This document shows, piece by piece, positions 8,690-47,014 of a DNA stretch of 64,000 nt (position 1 is the first letter of the stretch; each line of letters starts with the position of its first letter). The notes below the pieces were generated by a model, which worked only from the letters and a program-made list of their open reading frames with translations, was not told where the DNA came from and did no database searches. The stretch lies in the IMG/VR virus record IMGVR_UViG_3300023202_000383, positions 124,001-188,000 of that record, one strand, 5' to 3'. The position numbers and the translations under genes are program-made.

Positions 8690-8764
8690 TTAGCCCCGCT
8701 CGGCCTCGAACCGAGTTTTCCGGATTTAAAGCCCGGCGTGCTAACCAGGTACACTACGGGGCCA
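8690..8764 (-). tRNA. ochre-suppressor-type tRNA, anticodon TTA
   Basis: minus strand (T)GGCCCCG-TA-GTGT-ACCTGGTTA-GCAC-G-CCGGG-CTTTAAA-TCCGG-AAAA-CTCGG-TTCGAGG-CCGAG-CGGGGCT(A)-A. Confidence 0.85.
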
Positions 8765-15156: not shown

Positions 15157-15230
15157 GGCCCTGTATCCCAACTGGCAGAGGAATGACGCTTAAAACGTCA
15201 GAGTTGGCGGTTCGAATCCGCCCAGGGCTA
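15157..15230 (+). tRNA. tRNA-Leu(TAA), short variable loop
   Basis: TGACG-CTTAAAA-CGTCA; variable region only GAGTT. Confidence 0.85.
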
Positions 15231-18997: not shown

Positions 18998-19717
18998 ATG
19001 GATGACACACCGAAACCATGCCCGTTTTGCGGGGAAGATGATGCATACTTCACCAGCCACTATGTATCGCCTAACGTAAGGGTCGCGTGTGGGACGTGTG
19101 GAGCATCCAGCATTGACAAGTGCTGCAAAGAGGACGCTGTGAAATTGTGGAATGCACGCGCCACCCCGAAGGCAGAGACAGTGGGTCGAATCACAGAAAG
19201 GAAGTGCAAAATGAACTTTGAGCCAACACACACAATGGGAAAGAATGGACCAAGATGCAAGCCCCTAAACTTTGAGTCTGATCATATATCTAACGAATGC
19301 CTATTAGATAACGGCGTGGTTGTTGAGGTTCCAACGCTTGATCTCATTCCCATTAACCCACCGCTCAAGTGCGAGCCGGAGTACGTGACGGTTCGGAGGT
19401 TGATCGACGGGTACGGTGCAATGCATCGTGATTGGTGGACCAGCCGGGACCCGGACAGCGTGAAACACCACACGAACACAGGCGATGAGCGCACGTTCCT
19501 CGTCGGAGTGCCTATGGTCGAAGAGTTTGTCGAGCATTTCGACGTAGGGATCAAGGGCTATAAGTGGGGTGGCATCTCATTCAGCCCGCTCGGAGATGAT
19601 TTTAAGTTCCGATCGTTAATACCATGCAAGGAAACGTTGGACGAAGCTCGCATTGCGGTATGGGAATACATGATCGAGCACGAGCCCGACAAAGCACGGG
19701 CATGGATTGAGCAGTGA
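18998..19717 (+). CDS. Lar (restriction alleviation)-like zinc-finger domain fused to an unknown domain
   Basis: KPCPFCG...VACGTCGAS...AVKLWNAR. Confidence 0.6.
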   Translation: MDDTPKPCPFCGEDDAYFTSHYVSPNVRVACGTCGASSIDKCCKEDAVKLWNARATPKAETVGRITERKCKMNFEPTHTMGKNGPRCKPLNFESDHISNECLLDNGVVVEVPTLDLIPINPPLKCEPEYVTVRRLIDGYGAMHRDWWTSRDPDSVKHHTNTGDERTFLVGVPMVEEFVEHFDVGIKGYKWGGISFSPLGDDFKFRSLIPCKETLDEARIAVWEYMIEHEPDKARAWIEQ

Positions 19718-19994: not shown

Positions 19995-20067
19995 CCGCAT
20001 TTAGCTCAATTTGGTAGAGCGCTCGCTTTGGGGCGAGAGGTTGCAAGTTCAAATCTTGCAATGCGGA
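19995..20067 (+). tRNA. tRNA-Pro(TGG) with an anticodon arm one base short (atypical or pseudo)
   Basis: CCGCATT/AATGCGG; CTCGC-TTTGGG-GCGAG gives a 6-nt loop. Confidence 0.7.
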
Positions 20068-20102: not shown

Positions 20103-21020
20103 ATGAAATTCAATGAAATCGACTGGGATCTAATACAATCAGATTATGATTCGGGCCTTACTCTTAGGCAGGTTGGCAAGAGACATAAAATTGGCAATTC
20201 TAGTATCCATAAAGCACAAAAATCAGGACTTCTTAAGACTACGCGGAAGCGATCGTTATCAGAAGAGCATAGAAAAAAGCTTTCTGATAGTATGAAAAAA
20301 GCTGGTATAAGACCGCCCACAACTGTCAAGAGAGAAATTTCAAGCACTAAAGCATGTACTAAATGTACATGCTTGAAACCTATTAATCAATTCCATAAAA
20401 AAGATGGAGCATATGATGGTAGGCAATCAATATGCAAATCGTGCCGCAATATTCATGGTAGAAAATATATGTGCAAGCCGCATATAAACAAAAAACTCAA
20501 GAAACGAAAAGAAGAAATAAAATACAGAAATCAGAGATATATTAAAGAATATTTGTCGATGCATTCATGCAAGTGTGGTGTCGATGACATCAGACTTCTT
20601 GAATTCCACCATCTTAAAAATAAAAAATATGAAGTCCATCAAATGGTGTGGCACAAGTTAGAATCCATAGATAAAGAAATCGCAAAATGTGTTGTTTTGT
20701 GTGTTAATTGTCATAGAAGAGAAACAAATAAAGATAACCCTAGAGAGAATCAGAAGCATCGCAGGGCCATAAAATACAAATTAATAGAAGAAATTCATGG
20801 TACTAAATGTGTGGAGTGTGGGCTTGACGATAAGATAATTATGGATTTAAACCATATCGACCCAACGACCAAATTATTCAATATTGGCGGGTGGTCTGCG
20901 GGCGATACTGATGTATTGATTAAAGAGATAAAGAAATGTGAGCTTATCTGCCCTAATTGTCATCGTCTCAAAACTATTACACAGTCCGACAATTACCTTC
21001 ACAGGATAAAGGAGGCCTAA
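20103..21020 (+). CDS. HNH homing endonuclease with HTH and two tandem HNH domains
   Basis: CKCG...LEFHHL...CVVLCVNCHRRET and CVECG...LNHID...CELICPNCHRLKT. Confidence 0.85.
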   Translation: MKFNEIDWDLIQSDYDSGLTLRQVGKRHKIGNSSIHKAQKSGLLKTTRKRSLSEEHRKKLSDSMKKAGIRPPTTVKREISSTKACTKCTCLKPINQFHKKDGAYDGRQSICKSCRNIHGRKYMCKPHINKKLKKRKEEIKYRNQRYIKEYLSMHSCKCGVDDIRLLEFHHLKNKKYEVHQMVWHKLESIDKEIAKCVVLCVNCHRRETNKDNPRENQKHRRAIKYKLIEEIHGTKCVECGLDDKIIMDLNHIDPTTKLFNIGGWSAGDTDVLIKEIKKCELICPNCHRLKTITQSDNYLHRIKEA

Positions 21021-21021
21021 A

Positions 21022-21794
21022 ATGGCCAGGAAACCAAGAATACCGGTTAAGAACAGGGGGCGGCTTTGACTCCGCTAAGAATGGTGGAGTAAGGGGGTGT
21101 CTTTGAAAATGCCACTGAAATTATCGTCGAAATCCAATTTGGCGAAGGTGGCGATGATAGCAAGTTGTTTGTGGACGACCTGTTATCTGCTTACTTGAAA
21201 TATGCCAAGTCGCTCGGTTTTAAGTCCGATCTGATATTCTCAGATAACGGGCATGCTACAATTAAAATCATTGGTAACAATGTTTGGAAGGCTTTTAGAT
21301 ATGAGCCTGGTAAACATTGTGTTCAGCGTATCCCACCAACAGAGAGCAAGGGTAGAGCGCAGACTTCTATTGTTTCTGTGGCTGTGTTGCCGATACCGCC
21401 CAAGATAGGCACTAAGCTTAAATCGAGTGATCTCAAAATTGAGAGGGTTAACCTCGGTGGAAAGGGCGGACAGCACCAGAATAAGACTCTATCTGGTTGC
21501 AGAATGACTCATATTCCAACTGGCCTTAAAGCAACCATCAATGGTAGAGATTACCATAGCAATGAGCGGGAAGCTAAGAGGATACTGGCTGCTAGAGTTC
21601 AGGAGCTTAAACAATCTAAAGCCAATGCTAATTACTCCGCAAAAAGAGTTGAGCAACTTGGGGGCGGAGGCAGGAGCGATAAGGTGAGAACTTACAACTT
21701 CATTAAATCTAGGGTTGTAGACCATAATCTTGGCACTAAGACCAGGAACATCAAGCAAGTGATGAAGGGCAACTTTGAGCTGTTGTTGAAATAA
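21022..21794 (+). CDS. class I peptide-chain release factor (RF1-like PxT, GGQ; domain 1 largely absent) expressed through two +1 frameshifts
   Basis: AGGAGG SD and ATG 21022; CTT-TGA at 21064-69 and 21101-06; then EIIVEIQFGEGGDD, HCVQRIPPTE, GGKGGQHQNKT, THIPTG, RSDKVRTYNF; predicted 256 aa. Confidence 0.85.
21055..21070 (+). promoter_or_regulatory. prfB-type +1 programmed frameshift cassette 1
   Basis: AGGGGG-CGG-CTT-TGA-C, same architecture as E. coli prfB AGGGGG-TAT-CTT-TGA-C. Confidence 0.88.
21092..21107 (+). promoter_or_regulatory. prfB-type +1 programmed frameshift cassette 2
   Basis: AGGGGG-TGT-CTT-TGA-A, in the +1 frame of cassette 1; its own +1 frame is the RF ORF. Confidence 0.88.
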
Positions 21795-22739: not shown

Positions 22740-23357
22740 ATGTCTGCTGTACTTTCGCAGCCGGTTCTTGTTATCAACAAGAATTATCGTGCCGTTAACT
22801 TCGCAAGCGTCAAAAGAGCTTTCTGCCTTCTAGCTAATGGTGTGGCAGAAGTCATTGACGTAGAAGACGGCAAATACTACAATTACGACTTTGAGTCGTG
22901 GCAAGAACTTAGTGAGTTTGAATCTGAGTTCGAAGACAATAGGTATGACTGGGTCAATTGCGTTGACTACAAAATTCCTATACCAAAAATTGTTCGTCTG
23001 TTAGCATTCGGAGAATTCAAGAGACCGAAGGTTAAGTTCAATCGTAGGAACATCTACGCAAGGGATAAGAACACTTGTCAGTATTGTGGAAAGAGGTTCT
23101 CTACTAAGGATCTTAACTTGGACCATGTTTTGCCAAGATCTCTTGGAGGCCAGAGTTGTTGGACCAATATCGTATGCAGTTGCATAAAGTGCAACACGAA
23201 AAAGGCCAACAGAACGCCAGAGCAGGCTGGGATGAAGTTGATAAGACCTCCGAAGGCATTAGATAGGCCAATTTTTATGGTCAAGGAAAAGTATCACCAC
23301 GATTCCTGGAAGCATTTCGTGGACGAAGCTTATTGGAATGTGACCCTACGTGACTAG
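22740..23357 (+). CDS. HNH endonuclease (McrA-like / HNH_5, bacterial type)
   Basis: VLVINKNY, FNRRNIYARDKNTCQYCG, LNLDHVLPRSLGG, NIVCSCIKCNTKKANRTP. Confidence 0.9.
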   Translation: MSAVLSQPVLVINKNYRAVNFASVKRAFCLLANGVAEVIDVEDGKYYNYDFESWQELSEFESEFEDNRYDWVNCVDYKIPIPKIVRLLAFGEFKRPKVKFNRRNIYARDKNTCQYCGKRFSTKDLNLDHVLPRSLGGQSCWTNIVCSCIKCNTKKANRTPEQAGMKLIRPPKALDRPIFMVKEKYHHDSWKHFVDEAYWNVTLRD

Positions 23358-34339: not shown

Positions 34340-37150
34340 TTAAAGGTTGATCTGGCATGTTCCACCAGCACATGCTGCTTCACCAGACAGGTCAGTGTTG
34401 TCTTCTTCCTCGTGGAAGTCTTCCCAATTTATTTTTGTATAATTTGAGATTAGCTCTTTCCACTTTGCTTCATCTGCGTCGGTGGATATTTCTTCAAATG
34501 GAGCGTTTTCATACTCTTTATCACCAGTAAATGCCAGCATTGATACGCCCGAGAAGTACTTCTTATTTTTCCACAAGAATTCTTTAACATCATCCCATTC
34601 ATCTTCCTTGACGCTTATCGTGTTAGACACATTGTGCGTGACCCCTGGAGATGAATCAGGCTTGGCGGTTCCGGGCGATACCCAATTCTTTTGAGTAGAC
34701 ATGACACGCTCAAGGAATTCAACAGCTGTGAAGTCCGATCTTATAAGTGCCCCATCTGGTGCCTTGACTGGGAACATTAGAAGATCTTTGTTCTTATTGA
34801 CAGTAATGCACATATGCGGATTATGTTTTTTAAATTCCTTGTATGCTTCGCATTGCGGATTTACTCTTATTCTTCTGAAATATCTTCTAGCGTGGTGGCA
34901 ATGATGGCCAGCACCTACGCCTCCAAGCACTAATGATGCGGTGCCGCTTGGTTTGACGCATGTTACTCTAGCTGCCGACCTTATTCCAATTTTGTTTGCG
35001 ATTTCAATATTGGTTTCGACAGCTATTTGAGCTGCTGTCTTCTGAACCTCCGGGCTTAGAGCAATATCTGGATTGTCCATTATACCAGTGAGAGATACTC
35101 CTAGAAGTGCCTCTCTAGTGCATATTGCTTCGCTGACCCATCCAAGATAACCAAAATCTGTATATCCTGCTTGAGCTGTGCCAAGTATAGCTGCTGCTTT
35201 TACTCTGTCATAAAACTCTTCTGTTGTGTCTGCAGTTGCACAATTTACCTCAGATAAATTACATTGCTGCCAGCCCCAGTAGGTTGAGCCGACTTTCAAT
35301 TTTGGGGTCTTTTTGCCATTCTCTTTGGCCCATTTTTCTGTCCATACTTTTATCTGTGGCGTGATTTCGAATTTTGGGTTCAACCCGATTTCGACGCATT
35401 GTCCTATTTGAATAGTATTGATGAATACTTCATTATTTGATGGTTCGTTTAGGCAGTACACCTGCTTCTTGCCAATATATTCAATAGCTTTAACTTTGGT
35501 ATAGTCGTAAGATCCCTGGGGATAAGCTAGCGGGATTCTATCGCCAATTTTTAAGTCTTTGCATTGTTTCCTGATTTTAGTCCTACCAGCAACAGCAGTA
35601 GCAGTAGATCCAGTACCGTTTTTGCGCCAGTTTCTCTTATCTTCAAGGACTATCCATTGATGATTGGAAGTAGTCTCTATTTGGTCACCATTCTGCAATG
35701 TTATTCTATATACCTTAGCAGATTTAGATGTCCTAAAAACATTCGATGCAATTGATCTACCGTGACTGTTGACTATATTCTGGACGCCATAATCATCGAG
35801 AGTCTTATGGCTAGCATATTCTTGGCGTCCTCCGTTTTCCCACAATTCTTCGATGGTCTTGTATCCATCGCTTGTCATTAGCTTCATGTTGCCAGTAAAG
35901 CACGGATTAGCCCCTGTATCTTCGTCATTAGTAAAATAAAATCCAGGCTCGCCCCATTGTCTTGTCGATTTGAATATTCTGTCGTATTGTCTCTTCTTTG
36001 TCTCTTTACGATGCAAAACAACAGAGTTGTTAGACCTAGCCCTCCATGGATGAGTCTCGCCCCATTTGCCAGTCTTGGCATTCATCATTTCGCCATCGTC
36101 AATAGAAAACAGGCATATCATTGCCGCTTCTCTGATGCCGCCAGCGTAAACAGCGTCTGCCAATGAGCACATGATGTCATAACATTCTATTGGTCTTAGG
36201 TGTCTTCCTTGTGCTAAGTCTAGAATGCTTCTGGATCTATCTAATGCCTGCTTAAGCGGTAAGTGTCCAGGTGCCTTCCCGCCGCTTGTTTTAAGAGGAG
36301 ATCCCTTAGGTCTTATCTTGCCGTATGAGAACTCTACGTATGTTCCCGTATGCATATAGGATCTGATCAATTCGTGTGCTGCATCTGCCCAGCCTTCGAT
36401 TGTGTCTGGTATAGCAAAATGTTTTACATTGTCACTATCGATTCTTTTAAGCTCTGGCAACTGATCTACATGCTGGAATTGAACAGAGAACCCAACTCCA
36501 GTTCCACTCAACAGCAACCAGAAAGCTTCTGCAAAAAATTTTGGTCTGTTGCAAACAGAGAATGAGCAGTTGTAGCCTTTAGCGTGATTCAATTCTTGAG
36601 CAGGTCCTCCGAATTGCATAGATCTCATTGATCCAAGCACCTGCTTGTCCCGTACCTTATCCATTACCCAATCTAATTCGCCCTTAATTTGCGGGTATCG
36701 GTCAGCGTGCATTTTGTGCACTCTGTCTACACACTCTTCATAGGTTTCTCGCCTTTTCAGATCTTCTCTGTAGCGAGAATATCGCATTCTTACTACGAGA
36801 TCTTCTATTATTGTTGGGTCTGGGTCTAGACGAGTCTTTCTTAGATCGTCTTTGTGTCTACTATATAATATGTATTCTTCTGCAACACCGTGAAATTGAT
36901 AATCCATCAGTTTACGTTTGACGATTTGTTGAATGTCGTCGACGCCTATTCGATTGTCGCTGTCTAATCTGACAAATGCTTCATCTTCTATCGCTTTTAA
37001 AAGATGATCGAATTTCCCATTAATGTCTGTGCTAGCATCTTTTGCTGCTTTTTGGATCGCTATCTTTATTTTGTCTGGATTCCAGTCTACTGATGTTTTC
37101 CCATCTCTTTTGATAACTTTAGCGGACGCCTTCGTAAGTGGTGACATCAT
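34340..37150 (-). CDS. nrdJ: class II (B12-dependent) ribonucleotide reductase with ATP-cone and intein
   Basis: ATP-cone VIKRDG; SMRSMQFGG; YNCS; NPC-intein-CVEI; TCVKPSGTAS; C-terminal EAACAGGTC. Confidence 0.9.
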   Translation of the reverse strand: MMSPLTKASAKVIKRDGKTSVDWNPDKIKIAIQKAAKDASTDINGKFDHLLKAIEDEAFVRLDSDNRIGVDDIQQIVKRKLMDYQFHGVAEEYILYSRHKDDLRKTRLDPDPTIIEDLVVRMRYSRYREDLKRRETYEECVDRVHKMHADRYPQIKGELDWVMDKVRDKQVLGSMRSMQFGGPAQELNHAKGYNCSFSVCNRPKFFAEAFWLLLSGTGVGFSVQFQHVDQLPELKRIDSDNVKHFAIPDTIEGWADAAHELIRSYMHTGTYVEFSYGKIRPKGSPLKTSGGKAPGHLPLKQALDRSRSILDLAQGRHLRPIECYDIMCSLADAVYAGGIREAAMICLFSIDDGEMMNAKTGKWGETHPWRARSNNSVVLHRKETKKRQYDRIFKSTRQWGEPGFYFTNDEDTGANPCFTGNMKLMTSDGYKTIEELWENGGRQEYASHKTLDDYGVQNIVNSHGRSIASNVFRTSKSAKVYRITLQNGDQIETTSNHQWIVLEDKRNWRKNGTGSTATAVAGRTKIRKQCKDLKIGDRIPLAYPQGSYDYTKVKAIEYIGKKQVYCLNEPSNNEVFINTIQIGQCVEIGLNPKFEITPQIKVWTEKWAKENGKKTPKLKVGSTYWGWQQCNLSEVNCATADTTEEFYDRVKAAAILGTAQAGYTDFGYLGWVSEAICTREALLGVSLTGIMDNPDIALSPEVQKTAAQIAVETNIEIANKIGIRSAARVTCVKPSGTASLVLGGVGAGHHCHHARRYFRRIRVNPQCEAYKEFKKHNPHMCITVNKNKDLLMFPVKAPDGALIRSDFTAVEFLERVMSTQKNWVSPGTAKPDSSPGVTHNVSNTISVKEDEWDDVKEFLWKNKKYFSGVSMLAFTGDKEYENAPFEEISTDADEAKWKELISNYTKINWEDFHEEEDNTDLSGEAACAGGTCQINL
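35399..35902 (-). mobile_element. mini-intein (168 aa), C1...Gln end, at the catalytic NPC|EI site
   Basis: CFTGNMKLMT N-terminus; KQVYCLNEP...VFINTIQIGQ followed by C+1; no endonuclease motif. Confidence 0.85.
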
Positions 37151-41614: not shown

Positions 41615-43234
41615 ATGCCGAAGGATATCATTTTTGATGAGTCAGTTAGAAGCAAGATCCAAGACGGTCTCAACAAGCTGGCCCAAGCAGTCAGAGTGAC
41701 TTTGGGGCCGACTGGCCGTGTTGTCATGATTGAAAGGGATTTTGGAGACCCTATCATAACGAAGGATGGGGTCACTGTAGCCAAACACATAGATCTTGAA
41801 GATAAGCTGTCGAATATGGCTGCAATGATGGTGCGTCAGGCGGCGTCCAAAACTGCCTCTGAGGCTGGAGATGGCACAACGACTGCTACTATTTATACTG
41901 AAGCAATATATGGTGCTGGTATAAAGAGTGTTCTGGCTGGGGCTAATCCTCAAGATCTCAAAAATGGGATGAATAAAGCTGTACAGGCTATCGTCCATCA
42001 ACTTGAGAGAATGGCTAAGCCTATAACCAGCACAGAAGAGATAAAGCAGGTCGCTGCGTGCAGCGCCAATCAAGACAATATTATAGGGTCTATAATTGCC
42101 GACGCTATGGATAAAGTCGGCAAAGATGGCGTTGTCACAATAGAAGAAGGCAAGACGTTGGATACTTCGGTATCTGTTGTCGATGGTTATCAATTCGATA
42201 AAGGATATATGAGCCAACATTTTGTGACCAATAAGGAAAAGATGGTCGCTGAATACGAGGAGCCCTATATACTGTTGAGCGAAGATCGAATCGACGATCT
42301 TAAAAGCCTCTTGGGGATGCTTGAGCTCGCAATCAAGAAGGGCCAAAGGCCGATAGTTATCATAGCCGATGATTTTGATGATACGGTCATGACGACTTTG
42401 ACTGTCAATCACTTAAGGGGGTCGTTGAAAGTGTTGGCTATAAAGTCCCCCGGCTTTGGCGACAGACGTAAGCAGATGATGGAAGATATAGCAACAATAA
42501 CTGGTGCGAAGGTCTTCTCCAAGGCATCTGGCGTGACAATGAAGAATCCTAGCATAGACGCTTTTGGGTCGTGCGAAAAGATCACTGCGTCTGATGATTC
42601 CACTATTATAGTGGAAGGTGCTGGCGATGAATCTGAAATAGAAGAAAGAATAAATCAGATCAGGACTCAGCTCGAATCTGTTGGTGGCGATTTTGATAAA
42701 GAAAAGCTCCAAGAAAGGCTTTCTAAGCTGATAGGCGGCGTTGCTAGAATTGTCGTCGGCGGTGCTACAGAAGTTGAAGTTAGAGAAAAGAAAGATCGCA
42801 TCGACGACGCTTTACATGCTTGCAAAGCTGCTGTTCAAGAAGGAATATTGCCTGGCGGTGGTGTTGCTGTTCTACGAGCTTTCCAATCTGTTTCTCTGGA
42901 GTTTGATTCTAGAGATGAGGAAATGGGAGTTGGCATAATATTCAAAGCCATAGAAGATCCAATAAGGCAAATCGCCAAGAATACTGGCAAGGATGATGGT
43001 GCTGTTCTCGCTAAAGTGATGGAAAGCAGCGATGCCAACTTTGGGTTCAATGCTGCCAAGGATTCCTTCGAAAATCTGATCGACGCTGGCATAATCGTCC
43101 CAGCCAAGGTTGAGAGGATTGCATTGCAAAATGCCGCATCTATAGCTGCCTTACTTCTTGCTACGGATTGCATGATATCTATAATTCCTGAAGTCGCACC
43201 CGCACAGCCTGACGGGATATATCCAGGGATGTAG
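41615..43234 (+). CDS. groEL: chaperonin GroEL
   Basis: TLGPTGR, ITKDGVTVAK, GDGTTTAT, PGFGDRRK, GGGVA. Confidence 0.97.
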   Translation: MPKDIIFDESVRSKIQDGLNKLAQAVRVTLGPTGRVVMIERDFGDPIITKDGVTVAKHIDLEDKLSNMAAMMVRQAASKTASEAGDGTTTATIYTEAIYGAGIKSVLAGANPQDLKNGMNKAVQAIVHQLERMAKPITSTEEIKQVAACSANQDNIIGSIIADAMDKVGKDGVVTIEEGKTLDTSVSVVDGYQFDKGYMSQHFVTNKEKMVAEYEEPYILLSEDRIDDLKSLLGMLELAIKKGQRPIVIIADDFDDTVMTTLTVNHLRGSLKVLAIKSPGFGDRRKQMMEDIATITGAKVFSKASGVTMKNPSIDAFGSCEKITASDDSTIIVEGAGDESEIEERINQIRTQLESVGGDFDKEKLQERLSKLIGGVARIVVGGATEVEVREKKDRIDDALHACKAAVQEGILPGGGVAVLRAFQSVSLEFDSRDEEMGVGIIFKAIEDPIRQIAKNTGKDDGAVLAKVMESSDANFGFNAAKDSFENLIDAGIIVPAKVERIALQNAASIAALLLATDCMISIIPEVAPAQPDGIYPGM

Positions 43235-45823: not shown

Positions 45824-47014
45824 ATGCCATTGGTCAAAGTACTACCAACTGCTAATTATAAAGAACTTCCAAAATTAAAGCAGTTCACAAAAGGTTCTGT
45901 TGGCATCGACCTATATTGCGCATCCGATGCCACAATCATGCCCAGGCAAAAAATAGATATTCCATGTGCTATAAAATTAGAATTGCCAAAAGGGTATTAT
46001 GCTAGGATTACCGGCAGATCTTCATCATTCATGCTTGGTATAGATATTAGAGAAGGCATAATCGACCAAGACTACAGGGGCGAGATTTATATTGGTGCCT
46101 ATAATTTTAGCGATGAGACGGTCACGATTAGCAGAGGTGACCGGCTAGCTCAAATGCTAATATCAAAATACGAGGATATAAGCATTGAGTACGTTGAATC
46201 AATAAATGATACTCAGAGGGGAGACGGGGGTTTTGGCAGCACAGATGTTACTGTTGGGGTAGAACATGCCAATTTTATCAATAAAGAATTCTTAGATGAA
46301 TTCTACATAAAAAAAGGGCTGTCTGCTGCCGAAATCGCCAAGAGATTCAACGTTGGCAAAACAACAGTACTGAGGAAAATGACAGAAAATGGTGTTGCCG
46401 CCTTAAATTCGTGGGAAAGACATCCACCAGAATTAGACGAATTACAGAGCATGCTAATTGCCGGGTCTATAATCGGCGATTTATCCATCAAGCATAGCGA
46501 GGCTTGGACGCATGCCAGGTGTGACTTCGCACACGGGCCTAATCAAATAGACTACTTAAGATATAAAAAAGACATAATGGCGAAATTCGTTACAATGGAC
46601 ATAAATTCTAAATATAACAAAGAATTCGATTCCGTCACTTTTTATTTCTCGACCATCACACATCCAATATTCACGCGACTGAGGGAGGAATATTATCCTA
46701 ATGGTGTGAAAGTGGTGACCGATAAGCTTTTGAATAGATTGAATCCTTTTTCACTATCTGTTTGGTATATGGACGATGGGTCTCTGCACATTAGTAATAG
46801 CAATAGTAGGTGGATATCTATGCATGTGGAGGGGTTTGACCCCGACTCACAAGTTAGAATCTTGTCGTGGCTTAATGATAACAGGTATGAGGCTAAATTC
46901 AGAAACGACGGGAAAGGCCATAGGTTTATCGTTCTCAATTCGATTGGTACAAGAAGGCTTATAGACACAGTAGAACCACACATCATCCCATGCATGCAAT
47001 ACAAAATTAGGTAA
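45824..47014 (+). CDS. dut: dUTPase fused to HTH and LAGLIDADG endonuclease
   Basis: GSVGIDL, GRSS, GIIDQDYRGEI, GDRLAQM, RGDGGFGST; then IAGSIIGDLSI and LSVWYMDDGS. Confidence 0.88.
   Translation: MPLVKVLPTANYKELPKLKQFTKGSVGIDLYCASDATIMPRQKIDIPCAIKLELPKGYYARITGRSSSFMLGIDIREGIIDQDYRGEIYIGAYNFSDETVTISRGDRLAQMLISKYEDISIEYVESINDTQRGDGGFGSTDVTVGVEHANFINKEFLDEFYIKKGLSAAEIAKRFNVGKTTVLRKMTENGVAALNSWERHPPELDELQSMLIAGSIIGDLSIKHSEAWTHARCDFAHGPNQIDYLRYKKDIMAKFVTMDINSKYNKEFDSVTFYFSTITHPIFTRLREEYYPNGVKVVTDKLLNRLNPFSLSVWYMDDGSLHISNSNSRWISMHVEGFDPDSQVRILSWLNDNRYEAKFRNDGKGHRFIVLNSIGTRRLIDTVEPHIIPCMQYKIR

Follow-up and report, generated by a model that had tools for sequence, protein, structure and literature searches.

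How is a release factor produced from a phage gene whose reading frame contains no start codon upstream of the conserved domain and is preceded by two short reading frames, each of which ends at CTT-TGA? This question is raised by a locus within a 64-kb stretch of DNA (hereinafter, the window) from the 256.5-kb IMG/VR contig IMGVR_UViG_3300023202_000383. A sequence-only reading of this locus proposed that the gene is gated by two tandem +1 frameshift cassettes of the type found in bacterial prfB, the gene for RF2, and that synthesis of the phage factor depends steeply on low RF2 activity of the host. We examined the anatomy of the locus, the encoded protein and its homologs. The observation itself held in every sequence element, whereas the interpretation was supported only in part.

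Anatomy of the locus

A strong Shine-Dalgarno sequence (SD), AGGAGG (21010-21015, plus strand, as are all features of this gene), is located 6 nt before ATG 21022; the TAA of an upstream HNH endonuclease ORF (21018-21020) lies between the two. The ATG opens a 15-codon leader, MARKPRIPVKNRGRL (21022-21069), that ends with the first cassette (21055-21070), which consists of the SD-like AGGGGG (21055-21060), the spacer and E-site codon CGG, the slippery codon CTT (21064-21066), the stop codon TGA (21067-21069) and a C. The +1 frame, starting at 21068, runs for 12 codons, DSAKNGGVRGCL (21068-21106), to the second cassette (21092-21107), with AGGGGG (21092-21097), the E-site codon TGT, CTT (21101-21103), TGA (21104-21106) and an A. 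The next +1 frame (21105-21794) encodes 229 amino acids and ends in TAA. This frame is closed upstream by TAA 21090-21092, and its first ATG, GTG or TTG is TTG 21165, twenty codons into the conserved domain.

Both cassettes match the consensus described for prfB, namely, AGGGGG, a 3-nt spacer, CTTT and GA (PMC12421855). The 15-nt pattern AGGGGGNNNCTTTGA occurs only at these two sites in the window on either strand, compared to 0.03 expected occurrences, and none of 100 shuffles yielded two or more. The two copies form a direct repeat 37 nt apart, which is 1 mod 3, as required for two +1 shifts. A contig assembled separately from a different run accession (Logan assembly of SRR23862438) is 100% identical over 251 nt spanning the leader and both cassettes, which argues against an assembly error. 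A 9-bp hairpin is predicted at 21069-21090, starting at the last base of the first TGA and ending just before the second SD-like element (z = -4.1 against dinucleotide shuffles); comparable hairpins are found in some relatives with two cassettes, and the structure is strong in the window and four relatives but absent in others (mean z -1.3), so that its role remains uncertain. A search of the region against Rfam identified no family, and a scan for promoters and terminators yielded nothing above the shuffled expectation.

The contig represents a jumbo phage that encodes GroEL, ribonucleotide reductase and dUTPase and has no close cultured relative: a nucleotide search against 50,697 phage records yielded no match, and the best hits to its GroEL were only 50% identical, leaving the host unresolved. 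The gene is located inside an island of 26 tRNA genes and is flanked by HNH endonuclease ORFs. In the window, TGA appears to be a normal stop codon: the 100 ORFs of at least 100 aa end in TAA, TGA and TAG at 40:37:23, and treating any one stop as sense does not repair broken genes. Thus, the ORFs of the window, which covers 64 of the 256 kb, fit the standard code, although a tRNA with the anticodon UUA is predicted at 8690-8764 on the minus strand.

The encoded protein and its predicted fold

The ORF encodes a release factor of the RF1 type that lacks domain 1. A Pfam search detected the C-terminal half of PCRF and the RF-1 domain. Among the NCBIfam models, prfA scored higher (224 bits) than prfB (134 bits), but the protein falls far below both prfA equivalog cutoffs (224 and 220 bits against 400 and 423) because only model positions 102-334 are covered. 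In a sequence comparison with PDB, RF1 (1e-44) ranked above RF2 (1e-31), and an AlphaFold model built from 32 family sequences (pLDDT 92.7) superposes on ribosome-bound RF1 with TM 0.93 and rmsd of 1.6-1.7 A. The RF1-type PxT codon-recognition motif is present as PPT (21333-21341) within QRIPPTE, the catalytic GGQ motif (21465-21473) is intact, and the Gln and Thr that read the third stop base in RF1 are present. However, the His that is invariant in RF1 and RF2 (GRxHTS) is replaced by Gln here and in most of the family, and the GGxE element reads GGDD, so that the codon specificity predicted from the sequence is not certain. The sequence-only reading correctly recognized the RF1-type motifs and the near absence of domain 1. 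By contrast, kinship with PrfH, to which this reading compared the protein in size, is not supported beyond size: the PrfH model (TIGR03072) matches weakly and only in the GGQ domain (50 bits against a cutoff of 167), and no RtcB gene was seen among the neighboring ORFs scanned. A rescue-type factor, which was also suggested, is unlikely because the codon-reading domains are complete; we rejected both the PrfH and the ArfB-like readings on domain content and scores.

Conservation of the cassettes in phage homologs

The decisive evidence is comparative. A protein search returned 717 relatives, mostly of 205-250 aa, many of them encoded on contigs of 100-530 kb. We recovered DNA for relatives from IMG/VR, GenBank and Logan/JGI assemblies and read the region upstream of the conserved strand in all three frames; a partial metagenome scan with generic RF motifs returned only cellular RF1 and RF2 at 33-41% identity and added nothing. 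Thirty-three non-redundant loci, 32-65% identical in protein to the window (also given as 38-65%), need a +1 shift at a stop codon to reach the RF frame, and 13 of these, including the window and all six of its closest relatives, have two cassettes in series, spaced 34-70 nt apart. The codon before the stop is CTT in 45 of the 46 cassettes and GTT in one, and every leader has an ATG with a good SD. Beyond the CTT-stop core that was used to find the cassettes, the conserved positions are those known to drive prfB frameshifting: G-rich purines at -9 to -4, T at -3 in 44 of the 47 cassette sequences scanned (TGT being the usual, T-rich, E-site codon) and C after the stop in 35 of 47, in agreement with the logo for 8,164 bacterial genomes (PMC12421855). 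One of the 47 sequences, an apparent third upstream cassette in the locus L246, proved to be an artifact because the ATG start with an SD lies downstream of it. The window deviates from these preferences in that its first cassette has CGG in the E site and its second cassette is followed by A rather than by the weak-context C. The leader peptides are otherwise poorly conserved.

Some members of the clade (the loci L045, L061 and L218) start directly at an ATG four or five codons before the conserved strand, which indicates that the leader is not needed for the protein and is a regulatory add-on. Among the 120 best of the database relatives, gene callers truncated the N-terminus in 71; of the 49 with enough N-terminus, 40 show the translation of the final frame expected of a cassette. 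Thus, the device is common in the family, and most of these genes are currently mis-annotated.

In a maximum-likelihood tree, the phage factors lacking domain 1 are separated from five cellular RFs with 100/100 support, and a clade of 34 members (100/100) includes nearly all cassette-bearing genes. The window belongs to a subclade of 7 members, all with two cassettes, six of which, including the window, form a group with 100/99 support. The number of cassettes changes at least 11 times on the tree, and double cassettes occur in at least five separate places. Nearly identical proteins can differ in cassette state: L214 has a cassette whereas L216 has a direct start, L054 has TAG whereas L236 has TAA, and L001 has TAA whereas L048 has TAG.

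The 46 cassettes use TGA 27 times, TAG 15 times and TAA 4 times. Of the 13 double cassettes, nine have TAG or TAA first and TGA second, two (the window and L058) have TGA twice, one has TAG twice, one has TAA followed by TAG, and none has TGA followed by TAG or TAA. All six closest relatives of the window have TAG or TAA first and TGA second, so that, by parsimony, the first stop of the window changed to TGA. We found no association between the stop used and the PxT variant or the His/Gln state. A crude test for stop-codon recoding in the short loci of the relatives was uninformative except for the locus L226.

Proposed mechanism and comparison with known systems

We propose that synthesis of this factor requires two successive programmed +1 frameshifts. 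At each cassette, the ribosome would hold tRNA-Leu on CUU in the P site and UGA in the A site; the SD-like tract three bases upstream would pair with 16S rRNA and favor re-pairing of the tRNA on UUU, in competition with termination by the release factor that reads the A-site stop. This competition is established for prfB and is inferred here from the identical anatomy. The yield of the full-length factor should then equal the product of two slip probabilities, each set by host RF2 activity given that canonical RF1-type proteins do not read UGA, so that the device would be a steeper sensor than a single cassette, producing the phage factor when UGA termination is slow. Because the product appears to be a UAA/UAG reader, it cannot directly close a feedback loop on UGA, and control would be cross-regulation, as the sequence-only reading suggested, with at most an indirect loop in which the additional factor takes over UAA stops and frees RF2. 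The notion that the device senses only host RF2 requires qualification: it fits the two UGA codons of the window, but the closest relatives use UAG or UAA first and other relatives use UAG alone, so that the logic at the level of the family would be broader, a sensor of termination capacity that is partly autoregulatory where the stop is UAG or UAA. In relatives with UAG or UAA first and UGA second, the same design would combine autoregulation with RF2 sensing, and the product would be made only when both kinds of termination are slow. The interchange of stops among nearly identical proteins also implies that stop identity might not be tightly tied to one host factor. What the analysis establishes is the anatomy of the locus, its conservation and, at the level of a structural model, the RF1-type fold; that frameshifting occurs, that RF2 controls and represses it, and what the phage gains are inferences from sequence without experimental evidence. 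We consider the frameshifting highly likely, whereas our confidence in the RF2-sensor logic, and in the explanation as a whole, is no more than moderate.

Several alternatives have to be weighed against this scenario. The phage factor might read UGA along with UAA and UAG, in which case every cassette would be repressed by the product itself, as in prfB. This would be the simplest single rule covering all three stops, which are used by proteins with nearly the same recognition loop, and is compatible with the Gln-for-His replacement and the GGDD variant; however, the PxT motif, the Gln and Thr that read the third base, and the overall scores are RF1-like, we found no association of the His/Gln state or the PxT variants with the stop used, and the arrangement of an RF1-readable stop followed by UGA in nine of 13 double cassettes looks like two different inputs, so we consider this possibility unlikely. 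About equally unlikely, the cassettes could be fixed attenuators that sense nothing and, by multiplication, set a low constitutive output of a factor that is harmful in excess. Overproduced release factor is toxic in Bacillus subtilis (PMC12421855), the frequent changes in cassette number are as expected of a tunable dial, and members with direct starts exist; yet, a weak SD or start codon would attenuate more cheaply, all leaders retain strong SDs and ATG starts, and the specific retention of a stop codon with a weak 3' context, rather than any slow codon, points to competition with termination.

Translation from within the RF frame, for example, from TTG 21165, as assumed by gene callers that produce a 207-209 aa product, is very unlikely. 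Such a start, which is not preceded by an SD, would remove the conserved first strand and the GEGGDD element that is nearly invariant in the family and present in every RF1 and RF2, and would leave unexplained the conservation of the cassettes in the correct frames in 33 loci. Two frame breaks in one gene are typical of pseudogenes, but decay or sequencing error is close to refuted given the identical second assembly, the location of the breaks exactly at consensus cassettes, and the retention of the same arrangement across proteins only 48-65% identical while the ORF remains intact and is confidently folded in the model.

A more speculative possibility, which we regard as tentative, is that the tandem cassettes form a two-input translational logic gate. 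In the ancestral arrangement of this clade, the first site (UAG or UAA) would report RF1-type activity, including that of the phage factor itself, and the second (UGA) would report host RF2, so that the phage would run its own termination homeostasis, making the factor only when both inputs are low. The window phage would have rewired the first input to UGA, possibly because it also carries the UUA-anticodon tRNA, a potential suppressor that would corrupt a UAA or UAG sensor. If so, this would be the first programmed frameshift control of an RF1-type gene, the first natural use of UAG in a prfB-like cassette, and the first tandem +1 sensor.

The prfB frameshift is the textbook case of a translation factor measuring its own activity on the ribosome, and a 2025 survey of 12,753 bacterial genomes concluded that it is confined to RF2, never uses TAG and has no counterpart in RF1 genes (PMC12421855). 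The phage family described here, with frameshifting inferred from sequence, breaks all three limits and adds tandem copies; it therefore offers natural variants in stop identity, copy number, spacing, E-site codon and an optional hairpin for dissecting the competition between termination and +1 slippage. It also suggests that large phages monitor and top up the termination capacity of the host, which bears on how translation is kept running late in infection and on the evolution of stop-codon recoding in phages. In searches of PMC and bioRxiv, an incomplete sample of the literature, we found no report of a frameshift-gated phage release factor, of frameshifting in an RF1-type gene or of tandem prfB-type cassettes.

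Phage-encoded RF1 and RF2 have been noted in huge phages (PMC7162821) and in recoded phages (PMC13037316). The release factors of the stop-codon-recoded Lak, crAss-like and Jade phages (bioRxiv 10.1101/2021.08.26.457843) are, like the factor described here, class-I release factors that sit among translation genes and tRNAs, and a sister clade of the window protein, with a conserved in-frame TGA at a Trp position, belongs to this category; however, the ORFs of the window fit the standard code, and no frameshift gating is described for those factors. PrfH, the RtcB2-PrfH ribosome repair/rescue factor (PMC1586002), is also a short class-I RF homolog without domain 1, of similar length, but the window protein has a normal codon-recognition domain with PxT. 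Bacterial RF1 (prfA) shares the PCRF and RF-1 domains, the PxT and GGQ motifs and the fold predicted by the model, but contains domain 1 and the conserved His, and is not known to use programmed frameshifting. Genes that need more than one frameshift, such as retroviral gag-pro-pol with two -1 shifts and Euplotes and mitochondrial genes (PMC5009743), similarly have a yield that is the product of the individual efficiencies, but involve -1 shifts that produce fusion-protein ratios, or genome-wide +1 decoding quirks, rather than tandem sensor cassettes tens of nucleotides apart in a leader. The closest system is bacterial prfB itself, which shares the short leader ORF, the internal SD-like AGGGGG, the 3-nt spacer, the CTT slippery codon, the in-frame stop, and the main ORF, encoding a class-I release factor, in the +1 frame; the stop is usually followed by C in prfB and in the phage family, but in the window only in the first cassette. 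It differs in having one cassette and in that its product, RF2, reads the stop in its own cassette, which was TGA or TAA in 100% of 8,164 genomes and never TAG (PMC12421855), whereas the product here is RF1-type, both stops in the window are UGA, and relatives use TAG freely. Furthermore, the leaders in the phage family are 6-27 codons long rather than about 25, the shift precedes domain 2 because domain 1 is absent, and the carrier is a phage.

Phage tRNA genes and the stop codons of the cassettes

Among the 26 tRNA genes of the window, the only one on the minus strand, at positions 8690-8764, is a well-formed tRNA with the anticodon UUA, that is, of the ochre-suppressor type, which scores 55.9 bits with the Rfam tRNA model on that strand and has a canonical anticodon loop with U33 and A37. 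The window otherwise fits the standard code. It is tempting to speculate that a suppressor reading UAA/UAG might explain why this phage, alone in its subclade, carries TGA rather than TAG or TAA in the first frameshift cassette of the release factor (RF) gene. The gene at 19995-20067 was assigned a 2-base anticodon and no identity ("???") by ARAGORN; however, inspection by eye shows the loop TTTGGGG, which gives the anticodon UGG; this gene, with an Rfam score of 62.9 bits, is likely a second copy of tRNA-Pro(UGG). The gene at 15157-15230 is called tRNA-Leu(UAA) but is only 74 nt long and lacks the long variable arm expected of Leu tRNAs; its identity is uncertain. In two relatives, L213 (7691-7773) and L209 (10924-11011), a phage tRNA-Leu(GAG), the reader of the slippery CUU codon, is located just upstream of the frameshift-gated RF gene, among other Leu tRNAs.

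Predicted RNA structure between the two cassettes

A predicted 9-bp hairpin at 21069-21090 starts at the last base of the first TGA (z = -4.1). Hairpins in the same place but with different sequences are found in the relatives L244 (z = -4.7), L058, L246 and L003, whereas they are absent in L001, L048, L050 and L005. In several relatives, a CUCC immediately following the first stop can pair with the GGAG of the second SD-like tract.

Divergent arrangements and recognition motifs among the relatives

A sister clade of domain-1-less phage RF1-like genes (the IMG/VR loci L065-L123, L226 and L238) has an ordinary ATG start and carries a single conserved in-frame TGA located exactly at the Trp position that is conserved in bacterial RF1 (KGW). 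These phages are probably TGA-recoded, so that the RF1 gene itself would need UGA suppression in order to be read. A different arrangement is seen in two clade members, L049 (2470-2510) and L056 (2440-2510), where the leader and the RF are in the same frame and are separated by AGT-TGA, which could represent read-through gating, local recoding or a downstream start; L056 additionally contains a second in-frame TGA near the C-terminus, and a crude coding-density test gave no clear answer. A divergent single-cassette member (the IMG/VR loci L104-L109) possesses a prfB-like leader of 26 codons (GGGGG-TCA-CTT-TGA-C) and a PKND motif in place of PxTE. The variants PDND, PSND and PHLE are present in L053, L060 and L050. 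All of these, the PKND member included, may have altered codon specificity.

Gene neighborhood of the release factor

Within the tRNA island, the RF gene is flanked by HNH homing-endonuclease ORFs at 20103-21020 and 22740-23357; the stop codon of the first of these lies between the SD and the ATG of the RF leader. A Lar-like ORF is located at 18998-19717. Farther along the window (45824-47014; 41615-43234; 34340-37150 (minus strand)), a dUTPase ORF carries a LAGLIDADG homing-endonuclease-like insert, and the phage also encodes a GroEL and a ribonucleotide reductase of 936 aa. These are auxiliary genes typical of jumbo phages.
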